DNA of 64,000 nt from Bugula neritina. Taxonomy: Eukaryota > Animalia > Bryozoa. The notes beneath the pieces were generated by a model that was not told the origin of the DNA, did not search any database, and saw only the letters and a program-made list of their open reading frames with translations. The translations under genes were made by a program, and so were the position numbers. Positions 4,424 to 51,421 of this stretch are shown here, piece after piece. Position 1 is the first letter of the stretch. Each line of letters starts with the position of its first letter. The stretch covers positions 16,088,633 through 16,152,632 of the forward strand of contig OZ037769.1 in assembly GCA_964035545.1 (NCBI GenBank), written 5' to 3'.

Positions 4424-4513
4424 ATGGAGGAGTACATTGCTGAATTAGAGTTACTTTTAATAAAACACTTGGGAAAAGCAGAAAAAACAGGAAACTGGGT
4501 TGACTATGTCAAG
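4424..4513 (+). CDS. NTase-TPR gene copy 1, first coding exon (MEEYIAELELLLIKHLGKAEKTGNWVDYVK)
   Basis: Acceptor ctcag at 4401, ATG 4424, 30 codons, donor AAG|gtaaaa at 4514. Phase 0 matches the acceptor at 7700. The exon recurs at 31116 and 51332; flanks of the 51332 copy are divergent. Confidence 0.75.
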
Positions 4514-5541
4514 GTAAAATTTATATTTTGTCGTAAAAGTTATTGTAAATATTTATTAGTATATGATTGAGGTTTGAAGAACTTTAGTGAAATGTGGAAA
4601 GATTTTATACACATCATAGTTACACATGCAGTTTTAGTGCATATCATAATATTATGGTATGCAGCTTGTATGCACGGAGGTGCTGCAGTAAATGAGATAT
4701 AAAATAGTTATATATCTGTAGACATAATGAATACATAATCATGGAAATTGTAAACAAACTTTTTTCAACTTAAATAATTTATTATTGCTTTAAAACATGC
4801 TGCTTTAATCATAAAACAAATTCAATACAAGTTTTTAAAATGATAAACTTTTGAAGGCCTGCAGCAAATTTATCTGCATGTATGACATTGTTGGTAAATT
4901 TGGTTTATGTGTCCCAGAATTCTCAACTCTGTATGGGCTCTCTTTGACATTGCAATATGCCAGTGTGAACATGCATTACTTGTTGGCATCACAGAAATAT
5001 ATACAGACTTCAAGTAACTGTCTATCGAACTATATAGTTACTGTATAGACTATAGTAATTGTTAGTGGTATAGTCATTCTTGGGTAGAAAGCAGCCAAAA
5101 TGGCCCCGGCCTGATGTTTTACCAATGCATATATTTGAGGTTAACACTTGTTATAACACCATTATAGAGGGTGTCGAATCTGGGTAATCTTTTTGAAAAT
5201 GACTTCAGAAATATTTTTCATCATTTTCACTGCAAATTAAACCTTTATATACAGTTCAAAATGTAAACCATGTTGAGCGGAATCACTATGTTGAGAAACA
5301 ATCATGCGATCCTATTGCTAATCACATTCATAACAATCACGTGACAATATACTAACTAATTGCTTTATTAGAATCGCTGTATACTTGTTTACTCTCTCTT
5401 CCATTCTGTTATACAAAAACCATCGTCATGTTTTTGATTCAAATAAATATTTTATTACCAAATAATTGAATCAGTCAGTCAGTTTGCTCGATAACTTAAA
5501 TCAGCAATCAATATTGTATTTCACAATTAATACTTTACACG

Positions 5542-6174
5542 ATGGCAACACATTCAACAGGTTATGGGCCCAGTGGCTTCAAACACAGGCTTCTCTTTGA
5601 TGGTGACTCAAACAATTTCTCAATTTGGGAAACAAGATTCACTTCATACTTGTACACACAAGATGAAGGAGTACACACTGCACTTCTACCCAAAGAAGAA
5701 GGAGAAGATAACGCTGCTGACTTCAACAAAAAGAATAAGCGAGCTTACGCAAAGCTTGTACAAGTTTTAGACGAAAAGTCTTTTCAACTTGTGATGAGAG
5801 ATGCCAAAGACAATGGAAGGAAAGCATTCAAAATTCTAAAAGAACACTATGCAAGTACACAAAAGCCTAGAGTATTAACTCTTTATGAACAACTTACAAC
5901 TGTAAAAATGAATGATACAGAAGACATTACAGATTACCTGATTCGTGCTGAGAACTACTCAGCAGGCCTCAAGTCTGCATGCTGGGAAAATATTAGTGAC
6001 AATTTGGTGATCGCAATGAACGTCATACTACAAGGACCCGCACAAAACAGCAGAAATGGGACTCAGAATACCATATCACAAAAAACTGCACCAGATCTGA
6101 CAGAGGCCACTGACCAATCTGGACCACGTAAATCTGAACGGAAACGAAAGTCCTACCTACCTACAGGACTATGA
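5542..6174 (+). pseudogene. Copia gag fragment
   Basis: LLFDGDSNNFSIWETRF...DNGRKAFKILKEHY...ITDYLIRAE is Copia Gag-like; truncated. Confidence 0.8.
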
Positions 6175-6339
6175 CATAGAAGACACTAACTATGCTTGCT
6201 CACTGATGGCAAACATACCACAGTCCACCAAGAAGCTGTAAATTCAAGAGATAGAGAAGCCTAGAAAAGAGCTAAGGACAAGGAAATAAACACCCTACAT
6301 AACTCAAACAAGGAAAAACCCCTGGCGAAAAACCACATA

Positions 6340-6995
6340 AAACTAGATATGTAGCAAAAGGATATACTGACAAATACAATGAGTTGACTATGACGATACG
6401 TACAGTCCAACCACCAGATTCACATGGATCAGATTGCTGTTACAGAAAACAGCAAAAATAAAGCAAGAAGATACATTAACTAGATATTAAAGAGGCGTAC
6501 CCAAACATGCCAATCAATAAGGAAACCCATCTACAACAGCCTGAAGGGTACGAAGAAACCAGCAACCAAGGGAAGCTTACTTGGCGTCTCAACAAATCCA
6601 TATATATGGCCTCAATTAAAGCAGACGCAATTGGCACCAAACACTTACCACTTTCCTCAAAGAACAAGGCTTCACACCTGGTGCCAGAGACCCTTGTCTA
6701 TACTCAAAACAGGACCCTTCCGACTTTGTGCAAAACATTCAAAATGAAACAGCATAACCCTAACATAGTTTTCACCGACAACTTTGGAGCCATTGCCCCC
6801 ACTAAGGAACAACCATACTCACATCAGAGGAGCAAACACATTGACATTAGATTCCACATTGTCAGAGAGCAAACCACCATAGTATACCAACACATCAGAG
6901 GAGCTGAGAACCCTGTCAATGTCATGACTAGGAACTTGCCTAAAACCAATCACAGAATTGCCCTGGAGCTACTAGCTATCGAATCACATGCTTGA
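6340..6995 (+). pseudogene. Copia RT / RNase H remnants
   Basis: Discontinuous motifs TRYVAKGY, YSPTTR, LDIKEAY, QQPEGYE, TDNFGAI, RSKHIDIRFH. Confidence 0.75.
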
Positions 6996-7700
6996 GGGGG
7001 CGTGTTGAGAAACAGTCATGCGATCCTATTGCTAATCACATTCATAACAATCACGTGACAATATGCTAACTAATTGCTTTACTAGAATCGCTGTATGCTT
7101 GTTTACTCTCTCTTCCGTTTTGTTACACAAAAACCACCGTCATGTTTTTGATTCAAATAAATATTTTATTACTAAATAATTAAATCAGTCAGTCAGTTTG
7201 CTCGATAACTTAAATCAGCAATCAATATTGTTTTTCACAATTAATACTTTACACGATGGCAACACATTCAACACGCTATACCTAAACAATTTACAAGTAT
7301 TGAATATTAGAACAGACATATCGAGTAAATGAGGTCACACACAATCAGTAGTTATTGTAAATTTCCTAAATATTGATTATAATTTTCAATGGCCAACTCA
7401 AAGTACCAAAGTTATAGCTGTATGCCGAATTAATATTTTCAACAAAAGCTGTATTTGAGTTCTAATGTCTGAGCTTTGTAATAGAAATAAGAAGTCAAAA
7501 TATATTATATACTGTCGATAAGTTCAAATTTCCATGTTTCATTTCCATTCAGCAACTTGCATTCAGTTGGTGCTCTGCTGTTGTCAGCCTCAATGAATGA
7601 AGAAAAAATATTTAAATTGAAAAGAAAACAACAGATCTATCTGTTTTATAGCAATTTATACTTGTAAAAATAAGCAGTTTTTTTTTCCTTTGTGATGTAG

Positions 7701-10700
7701 AGTCATGGAATAGCAAACCACCTGCAAACCGTAGATTCACAAAACAGTCCGAGATACCAAAAGGTGTATGAAATAGAAAACAAATGGTACAAAGGAAAAC
7801 ATCCACTCACTTTTACAGAACATCAAAAATTGACAAGACAACATAAACAACAACTTAAAGAATATCGGGAAAACACAATCATTAACTTTGACAGTTTGAA
7901 TAGTGATGTAGAGTTGTTGGACATAGACAATGTGCTTAGTGATGCTAATTTAGAAATATCTACTCGGTTATCTAATGATGTATTTGAAAGTAGTGCGGAG
8001 TGTTCCAAAGAATTTGTGGAGTTTTCTCGTTCTATAATTAGATCATGTACAGAGTTGCTTAAAGGGTGTCAAGTAGAGCCACCATGTAATTTTGCTGTAA
8101 TTGCTTTGGGCTCTGTAGCTCGTGGTGAGGCAACTCCATATTCTGATCTTGAATACGCATTTCTCATTGAAAATGATAATGAGAGAGATTATTTCACTCA
8201 GTTGGCTGTTGACACATATTTTAGAATAACTAACCTCAATGAGTCCCCATTGAAAACCTTTAACATTAAAGTTGAAAACTCTCCTGACTGTCTCAGCGAG
8301 ATCTCTCCAGTAGGATATAGAATAGATGGTCTCACACCAAATGCTGGTAACATACCGACAGGAAATGGATTGGGTAGATCTCTCACCTTCACAGTTGAAC
8401 AAGCAGTAAAACTGTACAAAGAGGAAGTGATGTCACCATCTGAAGAACTAGCGAGTCTTTCGGATTTGCTCATGACATCACAGCTGATCTACTGTTCAGA
8501 TGATGGGGCACAGTTACATGACAGATTTATGGAAGAAATAGCTACATATGAGAAAGTTACAGCTCAGAATGATCATAAAATCAAACAGAAGAGATTGGAG
8601 AGACTCTCTCTAGATTTACAAAAATATGATTTTCTCCCGGAATTTGAATTTACAACCGTTGTTGGTGAAGATGTGAAGGTAAAAGAAGACATTTTCCGTT
8701 ACATCACTCTGTTGGCTACTAATCTAAACATTGCCCTTTGTTTTCAGCTAAACTTTCCATGGAAAGTGTATGAGGCACTTTATCAGTCAGGGATAATTTC
8801 TAAAGAAAGCCTGAGATACCTTCACATTGTCTTGGGACTCTCAATATACATGAGAACTATGGCATACATCATGATGGGAACTCAAAAAGCTGAAATCTTA
8901 CTGAGTACTCCAACTGCTGATATGAAAAGTGGAGTTGAAAAAAACAAACATTACCATGTACCAAGGAAGATATTTGTGACGTTTGGCTCAATACTGATTC
9001 CAATAAAACAATCTCTCATATCAAGTATGCACAAAGGAAATAGGCTACTATCGACATTAAAGGAGAAGAGTGTTATAAGTGAATACCTAAAATCAGTTAT
9101 TCCCAGGGATTTGGTGACAGATAAACATGATTATATGACAATCTGTGAAGTACTGTGTTATGTTGAAGACTCAAAAACAGCTTTGAAGTACATATCTGCT
9201 GGTTCAGGTGTTGATATCAGAAGTGTAGGATATGAGGAGTTTGTGAAATGTATAAGATCAAAATACAAGACAAACAAGTCAGATGATCTAGAGAAAAAGT
9301 ATTTGAAAATGTGCTGTCATATACTACTGAATACTGGCCATGATAGCAGTGCCATTGACTACCTGAGTTGGTTAATCAGTTATGAAACAAATTCGTTTGG
9401 CATACTGCAACAGAAGAGGTTGATAGCTGACTGTATGAGAAGACTTAGTAGATATAAATCTGCTAGGAGTATTCTCATTCAGATAAAGTCTACACTAGAA
9501 GAAGAGCTAATGATAGACAAGAACACATCTCTCACTGAGTACATACTGAGAAAGGTAGAAGCTTCTACTAGGTTAATACCAGAGTATATGCTATATCTGT
9601 TTCAATTCACATCTGATATCTTCCACTCACTGGGTGAAACTAATATTGAATTGTCAAATCTAGCTGAAGCCAAGTCCTACCTGATGCAGTCTCTTTCTAT
9701 TCACAAAGCATTAGGTGAAAAGAAGTTCTTAGGTTGTAGCGCAAGAGAAAACAAGATGAATGAAATAATTATTTGGGGTGAATTAGGAATTGTGTATCAA
9801 CGGGAGGGTGCATATGGCACAGCACTAGAATACTACACAAAGTCACTAGAGATGAATAAAGCTGTTTATGGTGAACATACAAACCAGTCTAGTATAGCTA
9901 GCAGCTATGGCAATATTGGTATGGTACTCAAACAACTAGGTAATTATGACACAGCACTAGAATATTGCACCAAGTCAATGGAGATGATGAAAGCTGTTTA
10001 TGGTGAACATACAAACCACTCTGATATAACTGGCAGCTATAGTATTTTTGGTGATGTACACGAGCAACTAGGTAACTATGAAACAGCACTAGAATATTAC
10101 ACCAAGTCAATAGAGATGAGGAAAGCTGTTTATGGTGAACTTACAAACCACTCTAAAATAGCTATCAGCTATGACAATATTGGTAATGTACACAAACAAC
10201 TAGGTTACTATGACACAGCACTAGAATATTACACCAAGTCAGTGACAATGGAAAAAGCTGTGTATGGTGAACATACAAACCACTCTAGTATAGCTATCAG
10301 CTATGGTAATATTGGTGATGTACACAAGCAACTAGGTAACTATGACACAGCACTAGAATATTACACAAAGTCAATAGATATGATGAAAGCTGTTTATGGG
10401 GAAAATTCAGCACATCCTGATCTTGCAGCTGTGATCTCTACCATTATAGGCATCTATTTAGTATACAGGAGATATGAAGACTGTCTGTTCCTTTGCTATA
10501 CTCCTGTATTGAGTAATCAATGTCTGTCCAAAGTCCTCAATGGAATATCAACATATTACGTCAGATCATCAAACTACAGAAGAGCTGCTCAGTTTCTGCA
10601 GGTTGCTATTTCTAAAGCTGCTGATCATAGCATGCAGCAGGCTGACAACTACCACCAGATGGGTAGATGTTACATGCTGATGTCATCATACAAGAAGAGT

Positions 10701-10979
10701 TGGTTTTGGTTGTACTCTGCTCTCTGTCTGTATCAGTCCTTTCCCAAAACCAGAGAGGCTATTTTGTCTCTTGGGAAAGTTCACAATATGTCCATTTCCC
10801 ATCTACTTCTACAAACTGGTCATGTGACTCAGTCTCTTGAACATTGTCAAAGATCTCTTGACAACTTTAACAATATCCCTGGTGTTGCTACACATTCTGT
10901 GATCAAACGAAAGAAGACACACCTTCTACAACTTTCTGACTCACTACATCTTATTAAAATTTTAACCAATCACTTCTAA
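7701..10979 (+). CDS. NTase-TPR gene copy 1, large terminal exon: Pol-beta-superfamily (GlnD/DUF294-like) nucleotidyltransferase + helical region + 5 x 44-aa TPR repeats + divergent C-terminal TPRs; about 1122 aa spliced
   Basis: ORF 7764-10979 is open back to acceptor ttttcctttgtgatgtag|AGT at 7700. Motif FAVIALGSVARGEATPYSDLEYAFLIE fits hG[GS]x9-13Dh[DE]h. GYRIDG supplies a candidate third acid. SYGNIGxVHKQLGNYDTALEYxTKS repeats follow. Confidence 0.88.
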   Translation, partial: SHGIANHLQTVDSQNSPRYQKVYEIENKWYKGKHPLTFTEHQKLTRQHKQQLKEYRENTIINFDSLNSDVELLDIDNVLSDANLEISTRLSNDVFESSAECSKEFVEFSRSIIRSCTELLKGCQVEPPCNFAVIALGSVARGEATPYSDLEYAFLIENDNERDYFTQLAVDTYFRITNLNESPLKTFNIKVENSPDCLSEISPVGYRIDGLTPNAGNIPTGNGLGRSLTFTVEQAVKLYKEEVMSPSEELASLSDLLMTSQLIYCSDDGAQLHDRFMEEIATYEKVTAQNDHKIKQKRLERLSLDLQKYDFLPEFEFTTVVGEDVKVKEDIFRYITLLATNLNIALCFQLNFPWKVYEALYQSGIISKESLRYLHIVLGLSIYMRTMAYIMMGTQKAEILLSTPTADMKSGVEKNKHYHVPRKIFVTFGSILIPIKQSLISSMHKGNRLLSTLKEKSVISEYLKSVIPRDLVTDKHDYMTICEVLCYVEDSKTALKYISAGSGVDIRSVGYEEFVKCIRSKYKTNKSDDLEKKYLKMCCHILLNTGHDSSAIDYLSWLISYETNSFGILQQKRLIADCMRRLSRYKSARSILIQIKSTLEEELMIDKNTSLTEYILRKVEASTRLIPEYMLYLFQFTSDIFHSLGETNIELSNLAEAKSYLMQSLSIHKALGEKKFLGCSARENKMNEIIIWGELGIVYQREGAYGTALEYYTKSLEMNKAVYGEHTNQSSIASSYGNIGMVLKQLGNYDTALEYCTKSMEMMKAVYGEHTNHSDITGSYSIFGDVHEQLGNYETALEYYTKSIEMRKAVYGELTNHSKIAISYDNIGNVHKQLGYYDTALEYYTKSVTMEKAVYGEHTNHSSIAISYGNIGDVHKQLGNYDTALEYYTKSIDMMKAVYGENSAHPDLAAVISTIIGIYLVYRRYEDCLFLCYTPVLSNQCLSKVLNGISTYYVRSSNYRRAAQFLQVAISKAADHSMQQADNYHQMGRCYMLMSSYKKSWFWLYSALCLYQSFPKTREAILSLGKVHNMSISHLLLQTGHVTQSLEHCQRSLDNFNNIPGVATHSVIKRKKTHLLQLSDSLHLIKILTNHF
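9760..10420 (+). repeat. Coding 132-bp TPR tandem array, 5 units
   Basis: TALEY motif recurs at 132-bp spacing five times. Confidence 0.9.
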
Positions 10980-11715
10980 CAGAAATGCTCACCACGAACC
11001 TGGTCTCCAGCGAAATTTTCAAGCTAGAATTTGCTTTTCCTTGGCCAAAATTTCCTTCTTTTCTTGTGACATTTTCTTCTTTCTCGTATCTAGTGTCAAC
11101 CCTGTGTATTGCGATGCTTTCAGCATGCCGACAGTTATGCCATCAGTTCTTTAGTTGTCGATTCTGGCTTCACAAATATGTGTATAGAAATATGGTACTT
11201 TCATTGGTATAGTTTTTGGCTCTCTTTTTACATACATTTAGATTTATTATAGATATTAATTATTATAATCATTATAATTCTTTAGTTACTGTGTTGTTTT
11301 ACTACTTATGATATATTTACTATACTCTGAGAGAGCAGTTTTATTAGTCTTTTATAACTCAAGTTTGAAACTTTCTTATACTGACTTCTGTATTACCTTG
11401 ATACATTATTGGAACGACATGATTTATGTTATAGCTCTTCATAGCAGATGTGTGCCAAAATGTGATATCTATAAACATTTTCCTGAAACAAGTAAAATGT
11501 TAAAACAGATGTGAACAGTGTGAAGATACTTCTAGCAACAAACATGACCTATATATTATTATATTGTATATACATACGCTGTCAACCACAGAAACCTTCT
11601 TTTGTACTCTTCTGATATCAACATTGTTTTCCTCGAGAATAGGCAGCTATAGAAAAAAAATTAATAAATAATAATATAAAGGTGCATGTTTTGAGTTAGG
11701 TGCTTTAAATTACAT

Positions 11716-12705
11716 TACACTGACTATTCATATAATAATATACCCAAAGAGTATACAATACATACAATACACTGACTATTCATATAATAATATACCCAAA
11801 GAGTATACAATACATACAATACACTGACTATTCATATAATAATATACCCAAAGAGTATACAATACATACAATACACTGAATATTCATATAATAATATACC
11901 TAAAGAGTATACAATACATACAATACACTGATTATTCGTATAATAATATACCCAAAGAGTATACAATACATACAATACACTGACTATTCATATAATAATA
12001 TACCGAAAGAGTATACAATACATACATTACACTGACTATTCATATAATAATTTACCCAAAGAGTATACAATACATACAATCCACTGACTATTCATATAAT
12101 AATATACTCAACGAGTATACAATACATACAATACACTGACTAGTCATATAATAATATACCCAAAGAGTATACAATACATACAATACAATGACTATTCATA
12201 TAATTATATACCTAAAGAGTATACAATACATACAATATACTGATTATTCATATAATAATATACCCAAAGAGTATACAATATATACAATACACTGACTATT
12301 CATATGATAATATGCTCAAAGAGTATACAATACATACAATACACTGACTATTCATATAATAATATACCTAAAGAGTATACAATACATACAATACACTGAT
12401 TATTCATATAATAAGATACCCAAAGAATATACAATACATACAATACACTGACTATTCCTATAATAATATCCCCAAAGAGTATACAATACATACAATACAC
12501 TGACTATTCATATAATAATATACCCAAAGAGTATACAATACATACAATACACTGAATATTCATATAATAATATATCCAAAGAGTGTACAATACATACAAT
12601 ACACTGACTAGTCATATAATAATATACCCAAAGAGTATACAATACATACAATACAATGACTATTCATATAATAATATACCCAAAGAGTATACAATATTTA
12701 CATTA
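11716..12705. repeat. 52-bp minisatellite, about 19 units, 3' of copy 1
   Basis: tacactgactattcatataataatatacccaaagagtatacaatacatacaa head-to-tail. Confidence 0.95.
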
Positions 12706-12711
12706 CTGTAC

Positions 12712-12870
12712 CTGGAGGGGGTGGTGGGTACTGACTAGTGTAGTCAGCTGTCTGTCCAGTAGGGAGTGCTGCCCTGTTGATGAGTGGAAGACGACCTTGA
12801 GGATAATGTTGTTGAGACTGAGAGTATGTTGGAGGAGGTCGTCTGCTGTTATGGTGACTCATCTCTTGTT
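12712..12870 (-). CDS. Pro/Gln-rich 159-nt exon with PPxY motif, copy 1
   Basis: Acceptor ctctactcttctgcttctttag, donor CCAG|gtacag, phase 1-1, frame open (QEMSHHNSRRPPPTYSQ...YPPPPP). Confidence 0.5.
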
Positions 12871-12999
12871 CTAAAGAAGCAGAAGAGTAGAGTGTAGTCT
12901 GCTAGTCATGTGACACTAGCAGTACAACCACTTGTTATTCAGTGTCACAGCTGCAGGCAGAAGAGTAGAGTACAGTCTGCTATAGTCATGTGACACCAT

Positions 13000-13110
13000 G
13001 CAGTGCAACCACTTGTTATTCAGGTAGTTAAAAGCAATGATTGTTACTATAGCTATTAGTAGCAATATTATCCCACAAAGCTCCACTATTGTTTGTATAA
13101 TAATGTTAGT
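13000..13110 (-). pseudogene. Putative transmembrane-coding remnant (IIIQTIVELCGIILLLIAIVTIIAFNYLNNKW); paralog at about 39845-39935
   Basis: Manual minus-strand translation gives a hydrophobic stretch in both paralogs, between the CLCA-like and Pro-rich exons. Confidence 0.35.
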
Positions 13111-14980: not shown

Positions 14981-15066
14981 AATTATTTTTCAGAGTGATG
15001 ATATCTTCTACGTACTGAGCAGTAATATAAAAAGAGCTTAAGTTAGCACAATAATACAACACTTAC

Positions 15067-15200: not shown

Positions 15201-15499
15201 CTACAACAATGCAATTATAGACAGTTGAATTCATAGAATTTGTTGAAAATTACAGAGACAGTAGAGTTCTAAAGAGACATAAAATATACACTTCTGTATA
15301 GAAAGAGTTATATCAAGTTATAACTTATATATTAAACTATTACTTTATGAGGACATACTACATTGTAATCTGTTGAATGGTAAGTTACTATTATTATGAT
15401 ATGGAGGTGGTGTTACCATGTATGTATGTGATATGTGTTATACTATTTACATTATTCATTCTTGTATACCAAATTCATTCTTAATGATTTACAGAACCC

Positions 15500-15513
15500 G
15501 TAACCATGGTAAC
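15500..15513. promoter_or_regulatory. RFX X-box-like palindrome upstream of copy 2
   Basis: GTAACCATGGTAAC matches GTHNYYATRRNAAC; donor AAG|gtaaaa at 15591. Confidence 0.45.
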
Positions 15514-15804
15514 CTAGCACGATTTAAAATAAAGAAGAGAAAGCTGCTTCTCAAACTAAAAATAAAGAACATGACATAAATTCTCAAAAGGTAAAAATAT
15601 GCATACATATATATTATATACTATATGCAGTTAAATATATAAAACCTATAGTATAAAATTACAGATTATCTATTATATATATGTAATATATATGTAATAT
15701 ATAGCGCTCCGAACCAACATGCTATAATTATACCGTCTCTAAAATTAGTATTGCGCTTTGCTACAGCATTGTATGTTAATTGTGAATATGTTGTCTGTGT
15801 TTAA

Positions 15805-16506
15805 AGGATTGCTCAATCTTAGTTTATTACAATCACATTATAATTATGAACTATAATCTAATGTGTATGCAAACAATTGTGGCTTTGCAAAGGGATATGT
15901 GCCTAGAAAACAGCTTTTCAAAATTCCAGTTTTGAGGGAGGTAAAACTTTCAGCCATGAAAAAGAATAGCCTAATACGTGACGTGTGAACGCCAGTAACT
16001 ATGCTGCACGTGCTAACTATAACGCTAGTATTCAAGGTTGCTGGGCACAACATCAACCAATAACGCTCAAGCAGTTACAGTGCGCTATATAGGTCAGCTT
16101 TGGTGTGCCCGCAATATTGCACAATCTAACCTAGTTTAGATCGATCGCAGGCATTCATCCTAAAGGATGCATGTTTTTGCAAGGCTTTTTTCTAATGTTT
16201 ACAAGCAAAATATAGTCTAATGTTATCACGTACATGTTATTTAAAATGTCAAAAAACTATAGATTGAGATAATTCACATTTGCACTTCTATAAATATACA
16301 AATTACAAGCTAAAAGATTACATCTCACAGCCATATTTCTATAGTTATTCATTTGTATAGTCACGTAACCAGCGGGAATGCTGGCGCTGTTACGTCACAT
16401 TTCCCAGCTCATTTCAAAATCGGCGTTTTGGCTGTTACCAATCTACACCCTCAACTTCAACTAACTTTTTCTACCTTTGGTCAAATGCTTTTTGTCAATG
16501 CACGCT
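15805..16506. mobile_element. Paralogous copy of the Kolobok-like MITE, right end removed by deletion
   Basis: ttaa|aggattgctcaatctt at 15801; near-identical to 50348-51052; right TIR absent. Confidence 0.65.
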
Positions 16507-17099
16507 AATACTGAGATATAAGTGATAATCATTTTGATAACACCTTGCTAACATGTGCAGCAAGTTGAACTTCTATATAATTATAGTACAGTTTAAATTT
16601 ATGCACATCATTGAGCAAAACTAACCTGTCTATGATGTAACAGGTAGTCATCCTGAACTAACTTGCAGGCAGAATCTAAAAACTCACATTCACTATATTA
16701 TATAGTATAGTATAACACATACTAAAAATGAGGAAAGTTGACATAATGCACCATGTAGTGGTATAATAAACAATCTCAATGTTATAAGTATTCAGTGTCA
16801 ACATACCAACATTCAACCAATCAGGGTTGCCTGCCAGCTTTAATATATCGGCATTAATTAATTACAAGTGAATTAAATTTCAAGAAACAAAACTATGCAT
16901 GGTAACAATTATAGTGAGTGTAACTTTTGTATTATATATGATTTGAACAACTTATGCCCTACTATTAGGATTTGTTATTCACAGCACGTTGTAGATGTTG
17001 AAACAGTTTCAGGTTAAGAACGCTGACAAAATTATGTATCATCTTATAAATCAATTTAAAATTATAAATATCAGCAGTTGTTTTTCCTTTGTAATGTAG

Positions 17100-20000
17100 A
17101 GTCATGGAATAGCAAACCACCTGCAAACCATAGATTCACAAAACAGTCTGAGATACGAAAAAGTCTATGAAATAGAAAACAAATGGTACAAAAGAAAACA
17201 TCCACTCACTTTTACAGAACATCAAGAATTGACAAGACAACACAAACAACAACTTAAAGAATATCGAGAGAATACAATCATTAACTTTGACAGTTTGAAT
17301 AGTAATGTAGAGTTGTTGGACATAGACAATGTGTTTAGTGATGCTAATTTAGAAATATCTAATCGGTTGTCTAATGATGTGTTTGCAAGTAGTGAGGAGT
17401 GTTCCAAAGAATTTGCAGAGTTTTCTCGTTCTATAATTAGATCAAGTAGAGAGTTGCTTAAAGGGTGTCAAGTAGAGCCACCCTGTAATTTTGCTGTAGT
17501 TGCTTTGGGCTCAGTAGCTCGTGGTGAGGCAACTCCATACTCTGACCTTGAATACGCATTTCTCATTGAAAATGAGAATGAGAGAGATTATTTCACTCAG
17601 CTGGCTGTTGACACATATTTTAGAATAACTAACCTCAATGAGTCTCCATTGAAAACCTCCAACATTAAAGTTGAAAAATCTCCTGACTGTCTCAGTGAGA
17701 GGTGTCCAGTAGGATATAGAATAGACGGTCTCACCCCAAATGCTGGTAACATACCAACAGGAAATGGATTAGGTAGATCTCTTACCTTTACAGTTGAACA
17801 AGCAGTGAAGCTGTACAAAGAGGAAGTGATGTCACCATCTGAGGAACTAGCGAGTCTTTCGGATCTGCTCATGACATCACAGCTGATATACTGTTCTGAT
17901 GATGGGGCACAGTTACATGACAGATTTATGGAAGAAATAGCTACATATGAGAAAGTTACAGCTCAGAATGATCATAAAATCAAACAGAAGAGATTGGAGA
18001 GACTTTCTCTAGATTTACAGAAATATGATTTTCTCCCAGAATTTGAATTTACAACTATTATTGGCAAAGATGTGAAAGTAAAAGAAGATCTTTTCCGTTA
18101 CATCACTCTGTTGGCTACTAATCTAAACATTGCCCTTTGTTTTCAGCTAAACTTTCCATGGAAGGTTTATGAGTCAATTTATCAGTCAGGGATGATTTCT
18201 AAAGATAGCCTGAGATATCTTCACATTATCTTGGGACTCTCAATATACATGAGAACTATGGCATACATCATGATGGGAACTCAAAATGCTGAAATTTTGC
18301 TAGGTACTCCAACAGCTGAAGTGAAAAGTTGGAGTGAAGAAAACAAACATTACTATGTACCAAGGAAGATGTTTGTGATGTTTGGCTCAATACTAATTCC
18401 AATAAAACAAAGACTCGTATCAAGTATGAACAAAGGAAACAGCCTGCTATCAACATTAAAGGAGAGGAGTGTAAGTGAATACCTGAAATCTGTAATTCCC
18501 AGTGACTTGGTGACAGATAAACATGATTATATGACAATTTGTGAAGTATTGTGTTATGTTGGAGACTCAAACACAGCCTTAAAGTACATATCTGCTGGTT
18601 CAGGTGTTGATATCAGAAGTGTAGAGTATGAAGAGTTTGTGAAATATATAAGAGCAAAATACAAGACAAACAAGTCAGATTACCTAGAGAAAAAGTATTT
18701 GAAGATGAGCTGTTATTTGCTGATTACAAGTGACCATAATAGTAGTGCCATTGACTACCTAAGTTGGTTAATCAGTTATGAAACAAATTGGTTTCATATA
18801 CTACAGTGTAAGAGGGTGATAGCTGAGTGTATGAATAAACTGAGTAGATATAAGTCTGCTAGGAATATTCTCATTCAGATAAAGTCTACACTAGAAGAAA
18901 AGCTCATGATAGACAAGAACACATCTCTCACTGAGTACATACTAAGAAAGGTAGAAGCTTCTACTAGATTGCCAGAGTATATGCTATATTTGTATCAATT
19001 CACATCTGATCTCTTCCGCTCACTGGGTAGAGTTAATATTCACTCATTAAATCTAGCTGAAGCTAAGTCTTACCTCATGCAGTCTCTTTCTATTCGCAGA
19101 GCATTGTGTAAAAAGAAGTTCTTAGATTATAGGGTGAGAGAAAACATGATGATACAATCAACTATTTGGGATAGCTTAGGAACTGTGTATAAACATGAGG
19201 GGGCTTATAGCACAGCATTAGAGTATTACACCAAGTCAGTGGAGATGATGAAAGCTGTTTATGGTGAACATACAAACCACTCTAGTATAGCAAACAGCTA
19301 TGGTAATATTGGTGATGTACACAGAGAACTAGGTAACTATGACACAGCACTAGAATATTGCACCAGGTCATTGGAGGTGGAGAAAGCTGTTTATGGTGAA
19401 CATACAAACCACTCTAATATAGCTATCAGCTATGGTAATATTGGTACTGTACACAGAGAACTAGGTAACTATGACATAGCACTAGAATATCACACCAAGT
19501 CACTGGAGATGATGAAAGCTGTTTATGGTGAACATACAAACCACTCTAGTATAGCTAGCAGCTATGGTAGTATTGGTCAAGTACACAAACTATTATGTAA
19601 CTATGACACAGCACTAGAATATTGCACCAAGTCAATGGAGATGATGAAAGCTGTTTATGGTGAACATACAAACCACTCTAATATAGCTATCAGCTATGGT
19701 AATATTGGTAATGTACACAGAGAACTAGTTAACTATGACACAGCACTAGAATATTGCACCAAGTCAATGGAGATGATGAAAGCTGTTTATGGTGAACATA
19801 CAAACCACTCTAGTATAGCTATCAGCTATGGTAATATTGGTGATGTACACAGACAACTAGGTAACTATGACACAGCATTAGAATATTTCACCAAGTCAAT
19901 GGAGATGATGAAAGCTGTCTATGGGGAAGGTTCAGCACATCCTCATCTTGCAGCTGTAACATCTTCTATTATAGACATCTATTTAGAATACAACAGATAT

Positions 20001-20531
20001 GAAGACTGTCTGTCCCTTTGCTATACTCCTGTATTGAACAATCAGTGTCTGTCCAAAGTTCTCAACGGAATATCAGCAGATTACATCAGATCATCAAACT
20101 ACAGAAGAGCTGCTCAGTTTCTGCAGATTGCTATTTCTAAAGCTTCTGATCATAGCACGCAGCAGGCTGACAACTACCACCAGATGGGTAAATGTTACAT
20201 GATGATGTCATTATACAAGAAGAGTTGGTGTTGGTTGTACTCTGCTCTCTGTCTGTATCAGTCCCTTCCCAAAACCAGAAATGTCATTTTGTCTCTTGGT
20301 GAAACTCACATGTCCATATCCCATCTACTTCTACACACTGGTCATGTGACTCAGTCTCTTGAACATTGTCAAAGATCTCTTGACAATGTTCAATGTCAAA
20401 GATTTCTTGAAAACTTTAACAAGCTCCCTGATGCAGTCAATACAAACTCTGTTATCCAACGAATGAAGACACACCTTCTACAACTCTCTGGCTCATTGAA
20501 TCTTATTAAAATCTTAACCAATCATTTTTAG
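17100..20531 (+). CDS. NTase-TPR gene copy 2, large exon (6 TPR repeats); open frame but ATG exon deleted, so possible pseudogene or N-truncated product
   Basis: ORF 17229-20531 is open back to acceptor gtaatgtag|AGT at 17099, with the same NTase motif. No MEEY exon between copy 1 and this exon; deletion junction at about 16506 relative to 51052/52551. Confidence 0.8.
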   Translation, partial: SHGIANHLQTIDSQNSLRYEKVYEIENKWYKRKHPLTFTEHQELTRQHKQQLKEYRENTIINFDSLNSNVELLDIDNVFSDANLEISNRLSNDVFASSEECSKEFAEFSRSIIRSSRELLKGCQVEPPCNFAVVALGSVARGEATPYSDLEYAFLIENENERDYFTQLAVDTYFRITNLNESPLKTSNIKVEKSPDCLSERCPVGYRIDGLTPNAGNIPTGNGLGRSLTFTVEQAVKLYKEEVMSPSEELASLSDLLMTSQLIYCSDDGAQLHDRFMEEIATYEKVTAQNDHKIKQKRLERLSLDLQKYDFLPEFEFTTIIGKDVKVKEDLFRYITLLATNLNIALCFQLNFPWKVYESIYQSGMISKDSLRYLHIILGLSIYMRTMAYIMMGTQNAEILLGTPTAEVKSWSEENKHYYVPRKMFVMFGSILIPIKQRLVSSMNKGNSLLSTLKERSVSEYLKSVIPSDLVTDKHDYMTICEVLCYVGDSNTALKYISAGSGVDIRSVEYEEFVKYIRAKYKTNKSDYLEKKYLKMSCYLLITSDHNSSAIDYLSWLISYETNWFHILQCKRVIAECMNKLSRYKSARNILIQIKSTLEEKLMIDKNTSLTEYILRKVEASTRLPEYMLYLYQFTSDLFRSLGRVNIHSLNLAEAKSYLMQSLSIRRALCKKKFLDYRVRENMMIQSTIWDSLGTVYKHEGAYSTALEYYTKSVEMMKAVYGEHTNHSSIANSYGNIGDVHRELGNYDTALEYCTRSLEVEKAVYGEHTNHSNIAISYGNIGTVHRELGNYDIALEYHTKSLEMMKAVYGEHTNHSSIASSYGSIGQVHKLLCNYDTALEYCTKSMEMMKAVYGEHTNHSNIAISYGNIGNVHRELVNYDTALEYCTKSMEMMKAVYGEHTNHSSIAISYGNIGDVHRQLGNYDTALEYFTKSMEMMKAVYGEGSAHPHLAAVTSSIIDIYLEYNRYEDCLSLCYTPVLNNQCLSKVLNGISADYIRSSNYRRAAQFLQIAISKASDHSTQQADNYHQMGKCYMMMSLYKKSWCWLYSALCLYQSLPKTRNVILSLGETHMSISHLLLHTGHVTQSLEHCQRSLDNVQCQRFLENFNKLPDAVNTNSVIQRMKTHLLQLSGSLNLIKILTNHF
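19160..19950 (+). repeat. Coding 132-bp TPR tandem array, 6 units
   Basis: Six ALEY motifs at 132-bp spacing. Confidence 0.9.
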
Positions 20532-21656
20532 GAAAAATGCTCATCGCACACATGGTCTCTATAGCAAAGTTTTAAGCTAGAATTTGCTTTCCCTTGACCG
20601 ACATTTCCTTCGTTTCGCGTATCTTATGTCAACCCTGTGTGTTGTGATGCTTTCAGCATGCCGACAGTTATGCCATCAGTTCTTTAGTTGTAGATTCTGG
20701 TTTCACAAATATGTGTATAGAAATATGGTACTTTCATCAGTATAGTTTTTGGATCTCTTTTTACATACATTTAGATCTATTATAGATATTAATTATTATA
20801 ATTCTTCAGTTTCTTGTGTTGTTTTACTACTTATAATATACTTACTATACCCTGAGACAGCAGTTTTGGTTAGTCCTTCATAACTCAAGTTTTAAACTTG
20901 GTTATATACTGACTTCTGTATTACCTTGAAAACTGTTCATATTGGGAAGACATTTTATGTTATATAACTTTTTATATTATTATATGCTTCACCATGTTGT
21001 ATGTTTTACCCACAATGCATTTGGTAGTTATAATCAACTTCCTGCATGACTATGAGCTAGAAGATTTTCTTATCAAAATAATATTATTTACTCTTTCAGA
21101 GCTTACCTTTTGCTTTTTCGAGTTTTCTTTCATGATTTCAGCAAATTGTATTTTTACCAATATTCTACTTGTGATGCATTTTATGCCACATCTTGTTAAT
21201 TTTGAAATTCAAAAAGTTTTTTTAGTTTCATGAAATTATTTTAATTTCAAATTTTATACTAATTTTCTTACGGTTTTGTATAGGTATGTATTCAATAGTA
21301 TAAATAAAAATATATTTTATGTTATCCAAACATTATTCACTTTAATATTAGTTTGAATTTAAATTTAGTTCTTCATAGCAGATGTGTGCCAAAATGTAAT
21401 ATCTAAACATTTTCCTGAAACAAGTAAAATGATAAAACAGATGTGATCAGTGTGAAGATACTTCTAGCAACAAACATATGTCCTATATACTATTATACTG
21501 TATGTACATACGCTGTCATCCACAGAAACTTTATTTTGTAGTCTTCTGATATCAACGTTGTTTCTCTCCAGAATAGCTTATAAAAAAAATATTAAATTTA
21601 GTTATTAAATAATAATATAAAGGTGCATGGTTTGAGTTAAGTGCTTCAAATTACAA

Positions 21657-23841: not shown

Positions 23842-24000
23842 CTGGAGGGGGAGGTGGGTACTGACTAGTGTAGTCAGCTGTCTGTCCAGTAGGGGGTGCT
23901 GCCCTGTTGATGGGTGGAAGACGACCTTGAGGATAATGTTGTTGAGACTGAGAGTATGTTGGAGGAGGTCGTCTGCTGTTATGGTGACTCATCTCTTGTT
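23842..24000 (-). CDS. Pro/Gln-rich 159-nt exon with PPxY motif, copy 2
   Basis: Same splice signals; ORF 23795-23992. Confidence 0.5.
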
Positions 24001-25763: not shown

Positions 25764-25896
<133 letters not shown>

Positions 25897-29184: not shown

Positions 29185-29486
<302 letters not shown>

Positions 29487-30782: not shown

Positions 30783-31062
<280 letters not shown>

Positions 31063-31115
31063 TATTTAATTTATTTATAATTCCGATTCGCAGGTACAAC
31101 ATAACATGGTGAATC

Positions 31116-31205
31116 ATGGAGGAGTACATTGCTGAATTAGAGTTACTTTTAACAAAACCCTTGGGAAAAGCAGAAACAACAGGAAACTGGGTTGACTATG
31201 TCAAG
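31116..31205 (+). CDS. NTase-TPR gene copy 3, first coding exon (MEEYIAELELLLTKPLGKAETTGNWVDYVK)
   Basis: Acceptor cgcag at 31093, ATG 31116, donor AAG|gtaaaa at 31206; paralog of 4424-4513. Confidence 0.72.
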
Positions 31206-32404: not shown

Positions 32405-35400
32405 AGTCATGGAATAGCAAACCACCTGCAAACCATAGATTCACAAAACAGTCAGAGATACCAAAAAGTCTATGAAATAGAAAACAAATGGTACAAAGGA
32501 AAACATCCACTCACTTTTACAGAACATCAAAAATTGACAAGACAACATAAACAACAACTTAAAGAATATCGAGAGAATACAATCATTAACTTTGACAGTT
32601 TGAATAGTGGTGTAGAGTTGTTGGACATAAACAATGTGTTTAGTGATGCTAATTTAAAAGTATCTAATCGGTTGTCTAATGATGTATTTGCAAGTAGTGA
32701 GGGGTGTTCCAAAGCATTTGCAGAGTTTTCTCGCTCTATTATTCAAAAGAGTAGAGAATTACTTAAAGGGTGTCAAGCAGAGCCACCCTGTAATTTTGCT
32801 GTAGTTGCTTTGGGCTCAGTAGCTCGTGGTGAAGCAACTCCATACTCTGACCTTGAGTATGCATTTTTTATTGAAAATGAGAATGAAAAAGATTATTTCA
32901 CTCAGTTGGCTGTTGACACATATTTTAGAATAACTAATCTGAACGAGTCCCCATTAAAAACCTTCGACATTAAAATTGAAAACTCTCCTGACTGTCTCAG
33001 TGAGATCTGTCCAGTAGGATATAGAATAGATGGTCTCACACCAAATGCTGGTAACATACCAACAGGAAATGGATTGGGTAGATCTCTCACCTTCACAGTT
33101 GAACAAGCAGTGAAGCTGTACAAAGAGGAAGTGATGTCACCATCTGAAGAACTAGCTATAGTCTTTCAGATCTGCTCATGACATCACAGCTGATATACTG
33201 TTCTGATGATGGGGCACAGTTACATGACAGATTTATGGAAGAAATAGCTACATATGAGAAAGTTACAGCTCAGAATGATCATGAACTTAAACAGAAGAGG
33301 TTAGAGAGACTTTCTATGGATTTACAAAAATATGATTTTCTCCCAGAATTTGAACTTACAACTGTTGTTAGTGATGGTGTGAGAGTAAAAGAAGACATTT
33401 TCCGTTACATCACTCTGTTGGCTACTAATCTGAACATTGCCCTTTGTTTTCAACTAAACTTTCCATGGAAGGTTTATGAGTCACTTTATCAGTCAGGGAT
33501 GATTTCTAAAGATAGCCTGAGATATCTTCACATTACCTTGGGACTCTCAATATACATGAGAACTATGGCATACATCATGATGGGAACTCAAAATGCTGAA
33601 ATTTTGCTGAGTACTCCAACAGCTGAAGTGAAAAGTTGGAGTGAAGAAAACAAACATTACTATGTACCAAGGACGGTGTTTGTGATGTTTGGCTCAATAC
33701 TAATTCCAATAAAACAAAGACTCATATCAAGTATGAACAAAGGAAACAGCCTACTGTCAACATTAAAGGAGAGGAGTGTAAGTGAATACCTGAAATCAGT
33801 AATTCCCAGTGACTTGGTGACAGATAAACATGATTATATGACAATTTGTGAAGTAGTGTGTTATGTTGAAGACTCAAAAACAGCCTTCAAGCACATATCT
33901 GCTGGTTCAGGTGTTGATATCAGAAGTGCAGGATATGAAGAGTTTGTGAAATGTATAAGAGCAAAATACAACACAAACAAATCAGACTATCTCGAGAAAA
34001 AGTATTTGGAAATGTGCTGTTATTTGCTGATTACAAGTGACCATAATAGTAGTGCCATTGACTACCTAAGTTGGTTAATCAGTTATGAAACAGATTGGTT
34101 TTGTATACTGCAGTGTAAGAGGCTGATAGCTGACTGTATGAACAAACTGAGCAGATATAAACCTGCTAGGAATATTCTCATTCAGATAAAGTCTACACTA
34201 GAAGAAAAGCTCATGATAGACAAGAACACATCTCTCACAGAGTACATACTAAGAAAGGGGGAAGCTTCTACTAAATTGCCAGAGTATATGCTAGATCTGT
34301 TTCAATTCACATATAATCTCTTCTACTCACTGGGTGTGACTAATATTTACTTATCAAATCCAGCTGAAGCTAAGTCTTACCTGATGCAGTCCCTTTCTAT
34401 TCACAAAATATTGTGTGAAAAGAAGTTCTTAGATTGTAGGTCAAGAAAAAACAAGATGACGAAATCAAATATTTGGGGCAAATTAGGTGTTGTGGATTTA
34501 CTTGAGGATAAGAATAGCACAGCACTAGAATATCACACTAAGTCACTGGAGATGTTGAAAGCTGTTTATGGTGAACATACAAACCACTCTAGTATAGCTG
34601 CCAGCTATAGCAATATTGGTACTGTACACAAACAACTAGGTAACAATGACACAGCACTAGAATATCACACCAAGTCAATGGAGATGAGGAAAGCTGTTTA
34701 TGGTGAACATACAAACCACTCTAGTATAGCCATCAGCTATAGCAATATTGGTACTGTACACAAACAACTAGGTAACAATGACACAGCACTAGAATATCAC
34801 ACCAAGTCAATGGAGATGAGGAAAGCTGTTTATGGTGAACATACAAACCACTCTAGTATAGCCATCAGCTATAGCAATATTGGTAATGTACACAAACAAC
34901 TAGGTAACTATGACACAGCATTAGAATATCACACCAAGTCACTGGAGATGAATAAAGCTGTTTATGGTGAACATACAAACCACTCTAGTATAGCTGCCAG
35001 CTATAGCAATATTGGTACTGTACACAAACAACTAGGTAACAATGACACAGCACTAGAATATCACACCAAGTCAATGGAGATGAGGAAAGCTGTTTATGGT
35101 GAACATACAAACCACTCCAGTATAGCTATCAGCTATGGCAATATTGGTAATGTACACAAACAACTAGGTAACTATGACACAGCATTAGAATATCACACCA
35201 AGTCACTGGAGATGAATAAAGCTGTTTATGGTGAACATACAAACCACTCTAGTATAGCTGCCAGCTATAGCAATATTGGTACTGTACACAAACAACTAGG
35301 TAACAATGACACAGCACTAGAATATCACACCAAGTCAATGGAGATGAGGATAGCTGTTTATGGTGAACATACAAACCACTCTAGTATAGCCATCAGCTAT

Positions 35401-36204
35401 AGCAATATTGGTACTGTACACAAACAACTAGGTAACAATGACACAGCACTAGAATATTACACCAAGTCAATGGAGATGGAGAAAGCTGTTTATGGTGAAC
35501 ATACAAACCACTCTAGTATAGCTATCACCTATGGTAATATTGGTAGTGTACACAGGCAGCTAGGTAACTATGGCACAGCACTAGAATATTACACCAAGTC
35601 AATGGAGATGATGAAAGCTGTTTATGGGGAAGGTTCGGCACATCCTAATCTTGCAGCTGTGATCTCTTCTATTATAGATATCTATTTACAATACAAGAGA
35701 TATGAAGACTGTCTGTCCCTTTGCTATACTCCTGTATTGAGTAATCAGTGTCTGTCCAAAGTCCTCAACAGAATATCAGCAGATTACATCAGATCATCAA
35801 ACTACAGAAGAGCTGCTCAGTTTCTGCAGATTGCTATTTCTAAAGCTGCTGATCATAGCAGGCAACAGGCTGACAATTACCACCAGATGGGTAAATGTTA
35901 CATGCTGATGTCATCATACAAGAAGAGTTGGTGTTGGTTGTTCTCTGCTCTCTGTCTGTATCAGTCCTTCCTCAAAACTAGAGAGGTCATTTTTTCTCTT
36001 GGTGAAGTTCACCTGTCCATATCCCTTCTACTTCTGCACACTGGTCATGTGACTCAGTCTCTTGAACACTGTAAAAGATCTCTTGACAATTTTAACAATC
36101 TCTCTGATGTCAATACAAACTCTGCTGTCAAATATCTGAAGACAGACCTTCTGCAACTCTCTGACTCATTGCATCTTATTAAAATCTTAACCAATCACTT
36201 TTAG
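32405..36204 (+). pseudogene. NTase-TPR gene copy 3, large exon (9 TPR repeats) split by a +2 frameshift at about 33157-33160
   Basis: Acceptor at 32404. Copies 1/2 read GAA CTA GCG AGT CTT; copy 3 reads GAA CTA GCT ATA GTC TTT, giving ORFs 32534-33181 and 33178-36204. Confidence 0.8.
34470..35650 (+). repeat. Coding 132-bp TPR tandem array, 9 units
   Basis: cacagca(c/t)tagaata at about 34519, 34651, 34783, 34915, 35047, 35179, 35311, 35443, 35575. Confidence 0.92.
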
Positions 36205-37261: not shown

Positions 37262-37420
37262 CACACTTATCATTCATATAATAATATACCCGAAGAGTAT
37301 ACAATACATACAATACACTGACTATTCATATAATAATGTATCCAAAGAGTATACAATACATACAATACACTGGCTATTCATATAATAATATACCCAAAAA
37401 GTATACAATACATACATTAT
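37262..37420. repeat. 52-bp minisatellite, 3 units, 3' of copy 3
   Basis: Same unit. Confidence 0.9.
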
Positions 37421-39116: not shown

Positions 39117-39142
39117 CTAAAGAAGCAGAAGAGTAGAGTGTA

Positions 39143-39845
39143 GTCTGCTAGTCATGTGACACTAGCAGTACAACCACTTGTTATTCAGTGTCACAGCTAC
39201 ACACAGAAGAGTACAGTATTACAGTCTGCTAGTCATGTGACACCAGCAGTACAACCACTTGTTATTCAGTGTCACAGCTACACACAGAAGAGTACAGTAT
39301 TACAGTCTGCTAGTCATGTGACACCAGCAGTACAACCACTTGTTATGTTATTCAGTGTCACAGCTACACACAGAAGAGTACAGTATTACAGTCTGCTAGT
39401 CATGTGACACCAGCAGTACAACCACTTGTTATTCAGTGTCACAGCTACACACAGAAGAGTACAGTATTACAGTCTGCTAGTCATGTGACACCAGCAGTAC
39501 AACCACTTGTTATTCAGTGTCACAGCTACACACAGAAGAGTACAGTATTACAGTCTGCTAGTCATGTGACACCAGCAGTACAACCACTTGTTATTCAGTG
39601 TCACAGCTACACACAGAAGAGTACAGTATTACAGTCTGCTAGTCATGTGACACCAGCAGTACAACCACTTGTTATTCAGTGTCACAGCTACACACAGAAG
39701 AGTACAGTATTACAGTCTGCTAGTCATGTGACACCAGCAGTACAACCACTTGTTATTCAGTGCATGTCACAGCAGTAGACAGAAGAGTAGAGTATAGCCT
39801 GCTAGTCATGTGACACCATACAGCAGCATTGCTACTTGTTATTCA
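39143..39845. repeat. 81-bp minisatellite, about 8 units (about 2 units at 12890-13022 and 24020-24160)
   Basis: gtcatgtgacaccagcagtacaaccacttgttattcagtgtcacagctacacacagaagagtacagtattacagtctgcta, nearly identical units. Confidence 0.92.
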
Positions 39846-49779: not shown

Positions 49780-51052
49780 ACTGTTGAAGGTTACAGAGAC
49801 AGTAGAGTTCTCAAGAGACATAAAATATACACTTCTGTATAGAAAGAGTTATATCAAGTTATAACTTATATATTAAACTATTACTTTATGAGGATATATA
49901 CTACATTGTAATCTGTTGAATGGTAAGTTACTATTATTATGATATGAAGGAGGTGTCACCATGTATGTATGTGATATGTGTTATACTATTTACATTATTC
50001 ATTCTTGTATACCAAATTCATTCTTAATGATTTACAGAACCCGTAACCATGGTAACCTAGCATGATGTAAAATAAAGAAGAGAAAGCTGCTTCTCAAACT
50101 AAAAATAAAGAACATGACATAAATTCTCAAAAGGTAAAAATATGCATACATATATATTATATACTATATGCAGTTAAATATATAAAACCTATAGTATAAA
50201 ATTACAGATTATCTATTATATATATGTAATATATATGTAATATATAGCGCTCCGAACCAACATGCTATAATTATACCGTCTCTAAAATTAGTATTGCGCT
50301 TTGCTACAGCATTGTATGTTAATTGTGAATATGTTGTCTGTGTTTAACGGATTGCTCAATCTTAGTTTATTACAATCACATTATAATTATGAACTATAAT
50401 CTAATGTGTATGCAAACAATTGTGGCTTTGCAAAGGGATATGTGCCTAGAAAACAGCTTTTCAAAATTCCAATTTTGAGGGAGGTAAAACTTTCAGCCAT
50501 GAAAAAGAATAGCCTAATACGTGACGTGTGAACGCCAGTAACTATGCTGCACGTGCTAACTATAACGCTAGTATTCAAAGTTGCTGAGCACAACATCAAC
50601 CAATAACGCTCAAGCAGTTACAGTGCGCTATATAGGTCAGCTTTGGTGTGCCCGCAATATTGCACAATCTAACCTAGTTTAGATCGATCGCAGGCATTCA
50701 TCCTAAAGGATGCATGTTTTTGCAAGGCTTTTTTCTAATGTTTACAAGCAAAATATAGTCTAATGTTATCACGTACACGATGTTATTTAAAATGTCAAAA
50801 AACTATAGATTGATATAATTCACATTTGCACTTCTATAAATATACAAATTACAAGCTAAAAAATTACATCTCACAGCCATATTTCTATAGTTATTCATTT
50901 GTATAGTCACGTGACCAGCAGGAATGCTGGCGCTGTTACGTCACATTTCCCAGCTCATTTCAAAATCGGCGTTTTGGCTGTTACCAATCTACACCCTCAA
51001 CTTCAACTAACTTTTTCTACCTTTGGTCAAATGCTTTTTGTCAATGCACGCT
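49780..51052 (+). repeat. Near-identical segmental duplicate of the copy-2 upstream region (15240-16506)
   Basis: Only scattered substitutions by eye; ORF-track peptides 15844-16056 and 50387-50599 differ at 2 of 70 residues. Confidence 0.9.
50043..50056. promoter_or_regulatory. RFX X-box-like palindrome upstream of copy 4 (duplicate at 48741-48754)
   Basis: GTAACCATGGTAAC; donors at 50134 and 48832. Confidence 0.45.
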
Positions 51053-51119
51053 TAGAAAAACACAATACTATGTGTGTTTGACCTAAATGGCCATTGATTA
51101 GACAAGATAGAGCAATCCT
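50348..51119. mobile_element. Kolobok-like MITE (TTAA TSD)
   Basis: ttaa|(a/c)ggattgctcaatctt ... aagatagagcaatcct|ttaa; termini AGG/CCT rather than piggyBac CCY. Confidence 0.65.
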
Positions 51120-51331
51120 TTAATTAAACAATTAATGTTCGAGCCTGAGTAGATATATATGTTTTATTATTCAATGTTCTCAGATGTATATTAATGTTCT
51201 ATTGAACTGATTATATATTGTTAAACATCTACCACAATACTACATTATACTATATGATAAATGATGACTTATATAAACTGTAAACTCACCTTTATTATTC
51301 AACACTCAGGTACAACATAACATGGTGAATC

Positions 51332-51421
51332 ATGGAGGAGCACATTGCTGAATTAGAGTTACTTTTAATAAAACACTTGGGAAAAGCAGAAAAAACAGGA
51401 AACTGGGTTGACTATGTCAAA
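51332..51421 (+). CDS. NTase-TPR gene copy 4, first coding exon (MEEHIAELELLLIKHLGKAEKTGNWVDYVK); rest presumably beyond the window
   Basis: Acceptor ctcag 51309, ATG 51332, donor AAA|gtaaaa 51422. Downstream 52548-52594 matches the copy-2 intron at 16504-16550. Confidence 0.68.

Follow-up and report, generated by a model that had tools for sequence, protein, structure and literature searches.

A tandem family of DUF294-TPR genes in the bryozoan Bugula neritina: candidate protein nucleotidyltransferases with diversifying repeat arrays

A 64,000-nucleotide stretch of the Bugula neritina genome (contig OZ037769.1 of assembly GCA_964035545.1, forward strand, positions 16,088,633 to 16,152,632), hereafter the window, contains four tandem two-exon paralogs, copies A, B, C and D, in which a nucleotidyltransferase (NTase) module is followed by an array of tetratricopeptide repeats (TPRs). 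Coordinates below refer to the window unless a contig is named. Sequence profiles and a structural model show that the N-terminal 420 aa have the GlnE/GlnD/DrrA-type nucleotidyltransferase fold rather than that of cGAS and the CD-NTases. The TPR arrays differ in their number of units, and their groove positions are diversifying. We propose, with about even confidence, that these proteins may be variable-specificity protein nucleotidyltransferases, serving recognition-directed protein nucleotidylation in defence. A first-pass annotation, made from the letters and their reading frames, had described tandem paralogs with shared motifs, and this description holds: there are four copies, and the large exons of A, B and C all carry unaltered LGSVARGEATPYSDLEY and GYRIDG...GNIP.

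The enzyme module

In Pfam searches of the window genes, DUF294 was matched above the cut-off (E 1e-7 to 1e-8), accompanied by weak matches to SidM_N and NTP_transf_2. SidM_N reached 16–17 bits, below its cut-off of 27, and the GEF and P4M domains were absent, as were F-box and OTU domains. NACHT and NB-ARC gave no Pfam match at E up to 0.1, in agreement with the earlier view that no such switch is present. An AlphaFold model was obtained for the 420-aa module of copy B (predicted local distance difference test, pLDDT, 91.8), covering the NTase domain and a helical, HEPN-like lobe (modelled stretch 17190..18450, + strand). A Foldseek search with this model gave E values of 3e-8 to 1e-6 for GlnE and DrrA, and no other match fell below 0.001. 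VIA-align matched the module to DrrA (PDB 6yx5) at Z 25.9 over 318 residues and to GlnE at Z 22.7 and 21.8, the next full-module match being kanamycin nucleotidyltransferase at Z 8.0. Furthermore, a sequence profile of animal and bacterial members retrieved DrrA at E 8.5e-16, spanning both lobes, and bacterial DUF294 clusters in the ESM Atlas showed template modelling (TM) scores of 0.66–0.68 to the module. The first-pass annotation had proposed a Pol-beta nucleotidyltransferase of GlnD/DUF294 type and called for a fold check; Pfam, Foldseek, VIA-align and the profile all lead to that class. Residues 264–417, the helical lobe, match HEPN-like domains, and the HEPN RNase motif R-x4-6-H was not found in this lobe in copies A and B.

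The catalytic acids are intact in the Bugula copies compared. All 42 of these share the G-S pair, D-x-E, the Asp of IDG, and one Lys and one Arg of the helical lobe without change, and the IDG Asp is also kept in 44 of 45 bacterial sequences. DrrA uses G98-S99, D110, D112 and D150 (PMC7815794). The ratio of non-synonymous to synonymous differences (pN/pS) is 0.29 in the catalytic core and 0.37 over the whole module, and the enzyme module is therefore under purifying selection. It had been expected that automated annotation would describe these proteins only as TPR/KLC/NPHP3-like. This was not the case, as the UniRef name is already "Protein-PII uridylyltransferase N-terminal..." with DUF294 noted. 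NCBIfam GlnD models scored 12–20 bits against cut-offs of 519–1299, and the HD and ACT domains were absent; with scores so far below the cut-offs, this name fits the domain and not the function.

TPR arrays and selection

The arrays comprise 5, 6 and 9 anchors in copies A, B and C, respectively, the same unit numbers as first counted, and from 4 to 9 per gene among the subfamily I copies with regular anchors. At the DNA level the 44-aa units are 89% identical within genes and 87% between genes, and each unit is modelled as two helices. Variation among units is concentrated at positions 9, 12, 15, 19, 22, 23, 34, 38 and 41. From consensus residues, we take unit positions 12, 15, 16, 19, 22 and 23 to correspond to canonical TPR positions 2, 5, 6, 9, 12 and 13, the groove-lining positions. 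Over these six, pN amounts to 0.36–0.39, compared with a pS of 0.11–0.13 in the units and 0.15–0.20 outside the array. A fixed-sites codon model, implemented in our own code on a single tree ignoring recombination and with the groove set fixed after the entropies had been seen, gave an omega of 2.87 at groove sites and 0.71 elsewhere (likelihood-ratio statistic of 59 against omega 1).

Two further sets of units were compared. The 25 units from other Bugula samples are most variable at positions 9, 12, 15, 19, 41 and 22, and the 29 units of a subfamily about 40% identical to copy B at positions 22, 41, 19, 23, 15 and 12. None of the 25 equals a unit of this genome, and 63 distinct groove signatures were observed among 74 units. 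Variable arrays, as anticipated in the first-pass annotation, are thus found both in number and in groove residues. The TPR arrays of fungal NLRs show the same evolutionary pattern (PMC4986451).

Family size and expression

The genome searched comprises 216 Mb in 321 contigs. Profile searches gave 68 matches, of which 57 are full-length modules, 53 of them in stop-free open frames of at least 850 aa; all three counts are lower bounds. The genome-wide count that had been recommended therefore describes a large and clustered family. Relative to copy B, the copies fall into three identity bands of 83–100%, about 40% and about 30%, the 40% subfamily being only partly sampled. The local cluster (C5, 15.90–16.16 Mb) includes 11 large exons and 9 first exons. 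Besides copy B, a second large exon of this cluster, at C5:15923912, has no first exon of its own; it lies 9.8 kb behind another copy and does not share the deletion junction of B described below. A distant match to the broad animal-plus-bacterial profile at C3:2029936-2030589 (- strand; E 3e-7, open frame of 629 aa), missed by narrower searches, is possibly a divergent family member.

The paralogs are mosaic: which of them is closest to copy B depends on the segment compared, a sign of recombination or conversion. Among named homologs, Bugula neritina proteins rank first (88%, and 96% for a single-copy relative), followed by those of Watersipora subatra (35–46%). Contamination from a symbiont was ruled out by the chromosome-scale contigs, the surrounding long terminal repeat (LTR) elements, a spliceosomal intron removed in the RNA-type runs, and the relatives in a second bryozoan.

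Four sequencing runs were compared with positions 31060–34480 at 88% likeness, the label RNA being a guess of the tool. In three RNA-type runs from three studies, both exons are covered, the intron is empty and a GT..AG joint connects exon 1 to the large exon. In the fourth run, which behaves as DNA, the intron is covered. Likeness is 90–99% for most contigs, so expression, one of the points raised by the first-pass annotation, is established for the spliced subfamily and not for copy C itself. In one run, RNA-type contigs carry exon 1 joined to foreign sequence, with loose ends at 31206 and 32427, and one contig lacks about 500 nt from the beginning of the large exon. The two loose-end sequences had no match within the window; alternative splicing or a deleted paralog are possible sources of these contigs.

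Relatives and origin

A scan of 185,579 prokaryotic genomes with one motif pattern, which was non-exhaustive, yielded 47 loci. Nearly all loci that could be placed in a named family come from intracellular bacteria, namely Parachlamydiaceae, Rhabdochlamydiaceae, Amoebophilaceae, Rickettsiaceae, Holosporaceae and Legionellaceae. TPR_12 repeats follow the module in 6 of the 7 bacterial relatives tested. The fusion has been described in Neochlamydia, where the 50 proteins of family NEX2 combine F-box, OTU, DUF294 and TPR (PMC4209131). Among animals, relatives were found in Branchiostoma (often with two or three modules), Owenia and the octocoral Paramuricea; one Owenia fusiformis protein consists of OTU, two DUF294 modules and TPR, an echo of Neochlamydia NEX2. 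ESM Atlas clusters point to chordates and, from few labelled members, to ciliates, and two metagenome relatives are located in eukaryote-like DNA.

In an LG+C20 tree, which is unrooted and without an approximately unbiased (AU) test, the bryozoan-containing clade (100/100) has a long stem and an Owenia protein as sister (99/91). Bryozoan, Owenia and amphioxus rows share one side of a branch with support 88/91, and the octocoral row alone is placed next to a bacterial row (81/88). A FastTree topology had suggested that several transfers into animals occurred independently, which this tree did not uphold. As far as the sequences indicate, either an ancient animal lineage that was lost many times or a transfer from symbionts long ago would fit.

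Comparison with known systems

The bryozoan module resembles DrrA/SidM in the whole two-lobe fold, the G-S-x11-D-x-[DE] motif, and the conserved Lys and Arg of the helical lobe. The two differ in that identity is 13%, the bryozoan D-x-E replaces the D-x-D of DrrA, and a GNxP loop is inserted; a TPR array stands in place of the GEF and P4M domains, and the bryozoan proteins are encoded by multi-copy, intron-containing host genes. Both NT domains of E. coli GlnE, GlnD, and CBS-DUF294-DUF294_C proteins share the fold and Pfam DUF294, whereas the bryozoan genes lack HD, ACT, CBS and cNMP domains. The DUF294-TPR proteins of intracellular bacteria, including NEX2, share the TPYSDLE core (TPYSD[LI]E), the order of DUF294, helical lobe and TPR_12, the multi-copy occurrence in single genomes, and 22–28% identity over the module. 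Unlike the bryozoan proteins, they are presumed effectors and often carry additional N-terminal domains (F-box in NEX2, OTU), and the bryozoan genes, which contain an intron and encode the GNIP loop, form a separate long-stemmed clade.

Fungal NLRs and brown-algal NB-ARC-TPR proteins have comparable kinesin-light-chain-like units with high internal identity, variation in repeat number, birth and death, and positive selection on the concave face (PMC4986451, PMC3341825). The bryozoan proteins differ in lacking the NACHT/NB-ARC switch and in having a putative DrrA-like enzyme as effector. The likeness is one of how the repeats work and not of membership in the NLR/STAND class. With cGAS, OAS and CD-NTases, the Pol-beta superfamily motif is shared, but these Mab-21/OAS-type folds gave no structural match among the top 50 of VIA-align and their C-terminal lobe is different.

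Proposed function and alternative explanations

By analogy with DrrA and GlnE, the N-terminal module would transfer a nucleoside monophosphate (NMP), probably AMP, from a nucleoside triphosphate onto a protein hydroxyl, with Mg2+ presumably held by D-x-E and the third Asp. The superhelix of 44-aa TPRs would provide specificity, given its changing number of units, the diversification of its groove residues and recombination between paralogs. It may bind ligands that vary, the most plausible being proteins of intracellular microbes or host proteins altered by them. Binding would then direct or switch on nucleotidylation, the ligand being either the substrate itself or only the trigger, and the bound target would be disabled or a defence response triggered. 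DrrA itself is activated through binding at a non-catalytic site (PMC7815794). In these terms, the family may consist of lineage-expanded cytosolic recognition-and-tagging enzymes, for which we consider the chances evenly balanced.

Several observations weigh against this proposal. The top Foldseek match is the adenylyl-removing domain of GlnE (1v4a, E 3e-8). The IDG Asp was equated with DrrA D150 by position and invariance, without residue-level superposition, and the acid at DrrA D249 is not kept, being Thr or Ser in the bryozoan copies. For the arrays, the limits of the selection test stated above apply; omega above 1 is likewise seen at positions 9, 34, 38 and 41, none of which belongs to the canonical groove set; and the subfamily of about 30% identity has ordinary, non-homogenised TPRs.

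Four other explanations were considered. The family may have a non-defensive role, such as symbiont management, development or reproduction, or may have expanded by unequal crossing-over with relaxed constraint on the surface. We regard this as unlikely. The numerous broken copies and transposon insertions would fit it, as would the omega of 0.7 at non-groove TPR sites, but groove pN is two- to three-fold above synonymous divergence, independent sets of units again vary at these positions, and the enzyme is under purifying selection.

Alternatively, the module might act in the opposite direction, stripping nucleotides placed on host proteins by microbial effectors, as the N-terminal domain of GlnE does, or serving as a decoy for such effectors. 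The match to 1v4a and the presence of the nearest bacterial kin in intracellular bacteria are consistent with this counter-effector function. However, the sequence profile and VIA-align favour DrrA, and diversifying TPRs are compatible with either direction and give removal no preference, so that we assign this explanation a low probability.

A role in colony allorecognition also appears improbable. Here, once tissues touch, the variable TPRs would recognise a self protein that is polymorphic, whereupon the enzyme would set off rejection, as in the case of fungal het NLRs. Bugula is a colonial animal, its repeats evolve like fungal NLR arrays, and subfamily I proteins of other Bugula samples reach at most about 90% identity to the copies described here, compared with 96% for the single-copy relative. 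Nevertheless, no transmembrane-like segment was found in the large exons, the copies occupy many dispersed loci instead of a single haplotypic locus, and relatives occur in solitary animals (Owenia, amphioxus).

Finally, we give little credence to a ligand-gated enzyme that would make a free nucleotide messenger or oligonucleotide, as cGAS, OAS, CD-NTase or Hailong HalB do: the superfamily is shared and HalB was weakly matched (VIA-align Z 6.0), but the CD-NTase CdnC reached only E 0.7 in Foldseek, cGAS and OAS were absent among the 50 listed rows of both structure searches, and full two-lobe matches were restricted to the protein-modifying DrrA and GlnE. Between the two activities offered in the first-pass annotation, NMP transfer is therefore the one that the fold favours, and the second-messenger synthase is not.

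Organization of the tandem cluster

Homology searches were run exon by exon, with copy C handled in two pieces. Only copy A appears complete and intact within the window, with a product of about 1122 aa. Its coding exon 1 (4424..4513, + strand; 30 codons, ATG start, phase-0 GT donor) encodes an N-terminus with homologs in Bugula and Watersipora proteins. The large exon (7701..10979, +; 1092 open codons) encodes the NTase and helical module, a linker, the 44-aa TPR array (9762..10430, +; 5 anchors) and a C-terminal TPR cap. Aligned to the DrrA motif, its catalytic core (8109..8327, +) has G-S at 8109, D-x-E at 8145 and the probable third Asp, of IDG, at 8325. A degenerate copia-type LTR element (5289..7279, +; LTRs 95% identical) occupies the intron.

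Copy B has a large exon (17100..20531, +; 1143 open codons, 6 TPR anchors) without a start exon of its own, and the first in-frame Met is residue 244, downstream of the three acidic residues of the catalytic core. Coding exon 1 was taken by a 1.5-kb deletion relative to copy D, with 3-nt microhomology at the junction (16500..16510). The breakpoint is also the end of a high-copy dispersed repeat (~16420–16506 and 50966–51052; 302 candidates, 98–100% identical). Upstream, an AG...GT bounded segment (15495..15590, +) has homologous DNA 0.5–1.3 kb before exon 1 in six paralogs and is probably a non-coding 5' exon that copy B has retained. The private changes of B are near-neutral in appearance (4 synonymous, 10 non-synonymous), as in some complete copies. 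The idea that the copies were built to share one first exon among alternative last exons found no support, the loss of exon 1 being a local deletion unique to B.

In copy C, coding exon 1 (31116..31205, +; 30 codons, phase-0 GT donor) is connected to position 32405 by the GT..AG joint seen in the RNA-type contigs of the subfamily. The frame of the large exon (32405..36204, +; 9 TPR anchors) is broken by a 2-nt insertion at 33157–33158. This insertion was present in none of the run contigs, which are unable to prove its absence, and it may be haplotype-specific or an assembly error. Copy D begins with a coding exon 1 of the same length and phase (51332..51421, +; GT donor intact), and its large exon lies just past the end of the window (C5:16155613; open frame of 1221 aa). 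The intron of D contains gypsy-type LTR retrotransposons (52913..64000, +). In the first element (52913–58273) the LTRs are 98.9% identical, indicating a recent insertion; this and the second element (~58700–64000) have 50–59% GC, compared with 30% in the surrounding region. The insertion in C, the deletion in B and the elements in the introns of A and D, within a large family, confirm the birth-and-death lesions recognized in the first-pass annotation.

Repeats accompany the genes. An 81-bp tandem array downstream of copy C (39142–39818, 8.3 copies), with shorter versions downstream of A (12706–13023) and B (23836–24159), belongs to the duplicated gene unit. This unit also includes 50–52 bp minisatellites, one downstream (11711–12696, 21652–22781, 37272–37416) and one upstream (610–871, 3886–4035, 29569–29836). 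Both differ in copy number among paralogs and may promote unequal crossing-over.

Implications

The enzyme class, the bacterial DUF294-TPR fusion and diversifying TPR arrays are each already known. Their combination in this animal DUF294-TPR family of about 60 genes is annotated in databases, and no description of it was found in the literature searched, outside which most subscription papers fall; the same literature gave no paper on genes for immunity or allorecognition in bryozoans. In a 2021 AMPylation review, the only eukaryotic AMPylases listed are Fic proteins and SelO, with GlnE and DrrA given as bacterial (PMC8097203). Tentatively, and with more doubt than for the function proposed above, the family could add to Fic and SelO a third class of protein AMPylases in animals, one that intracellular bacteria also have, and could serve bryozoans as a diversifying repertoire of intracellular immune receptor-enzymes that operates without an NLR-type ATPase switch. 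If this is true, an expanded, expressed and catalytically intact animal family of DrrA/GlnE type would lengthen the list of eukaryotic AMPylases, and bryozoans would gain a concrete candidate receptor repertoire. The architecture held in common with the effectors of intracellular bacteria suggests that the same enzyme-repeat fusion may be used by hosts and symbionts.

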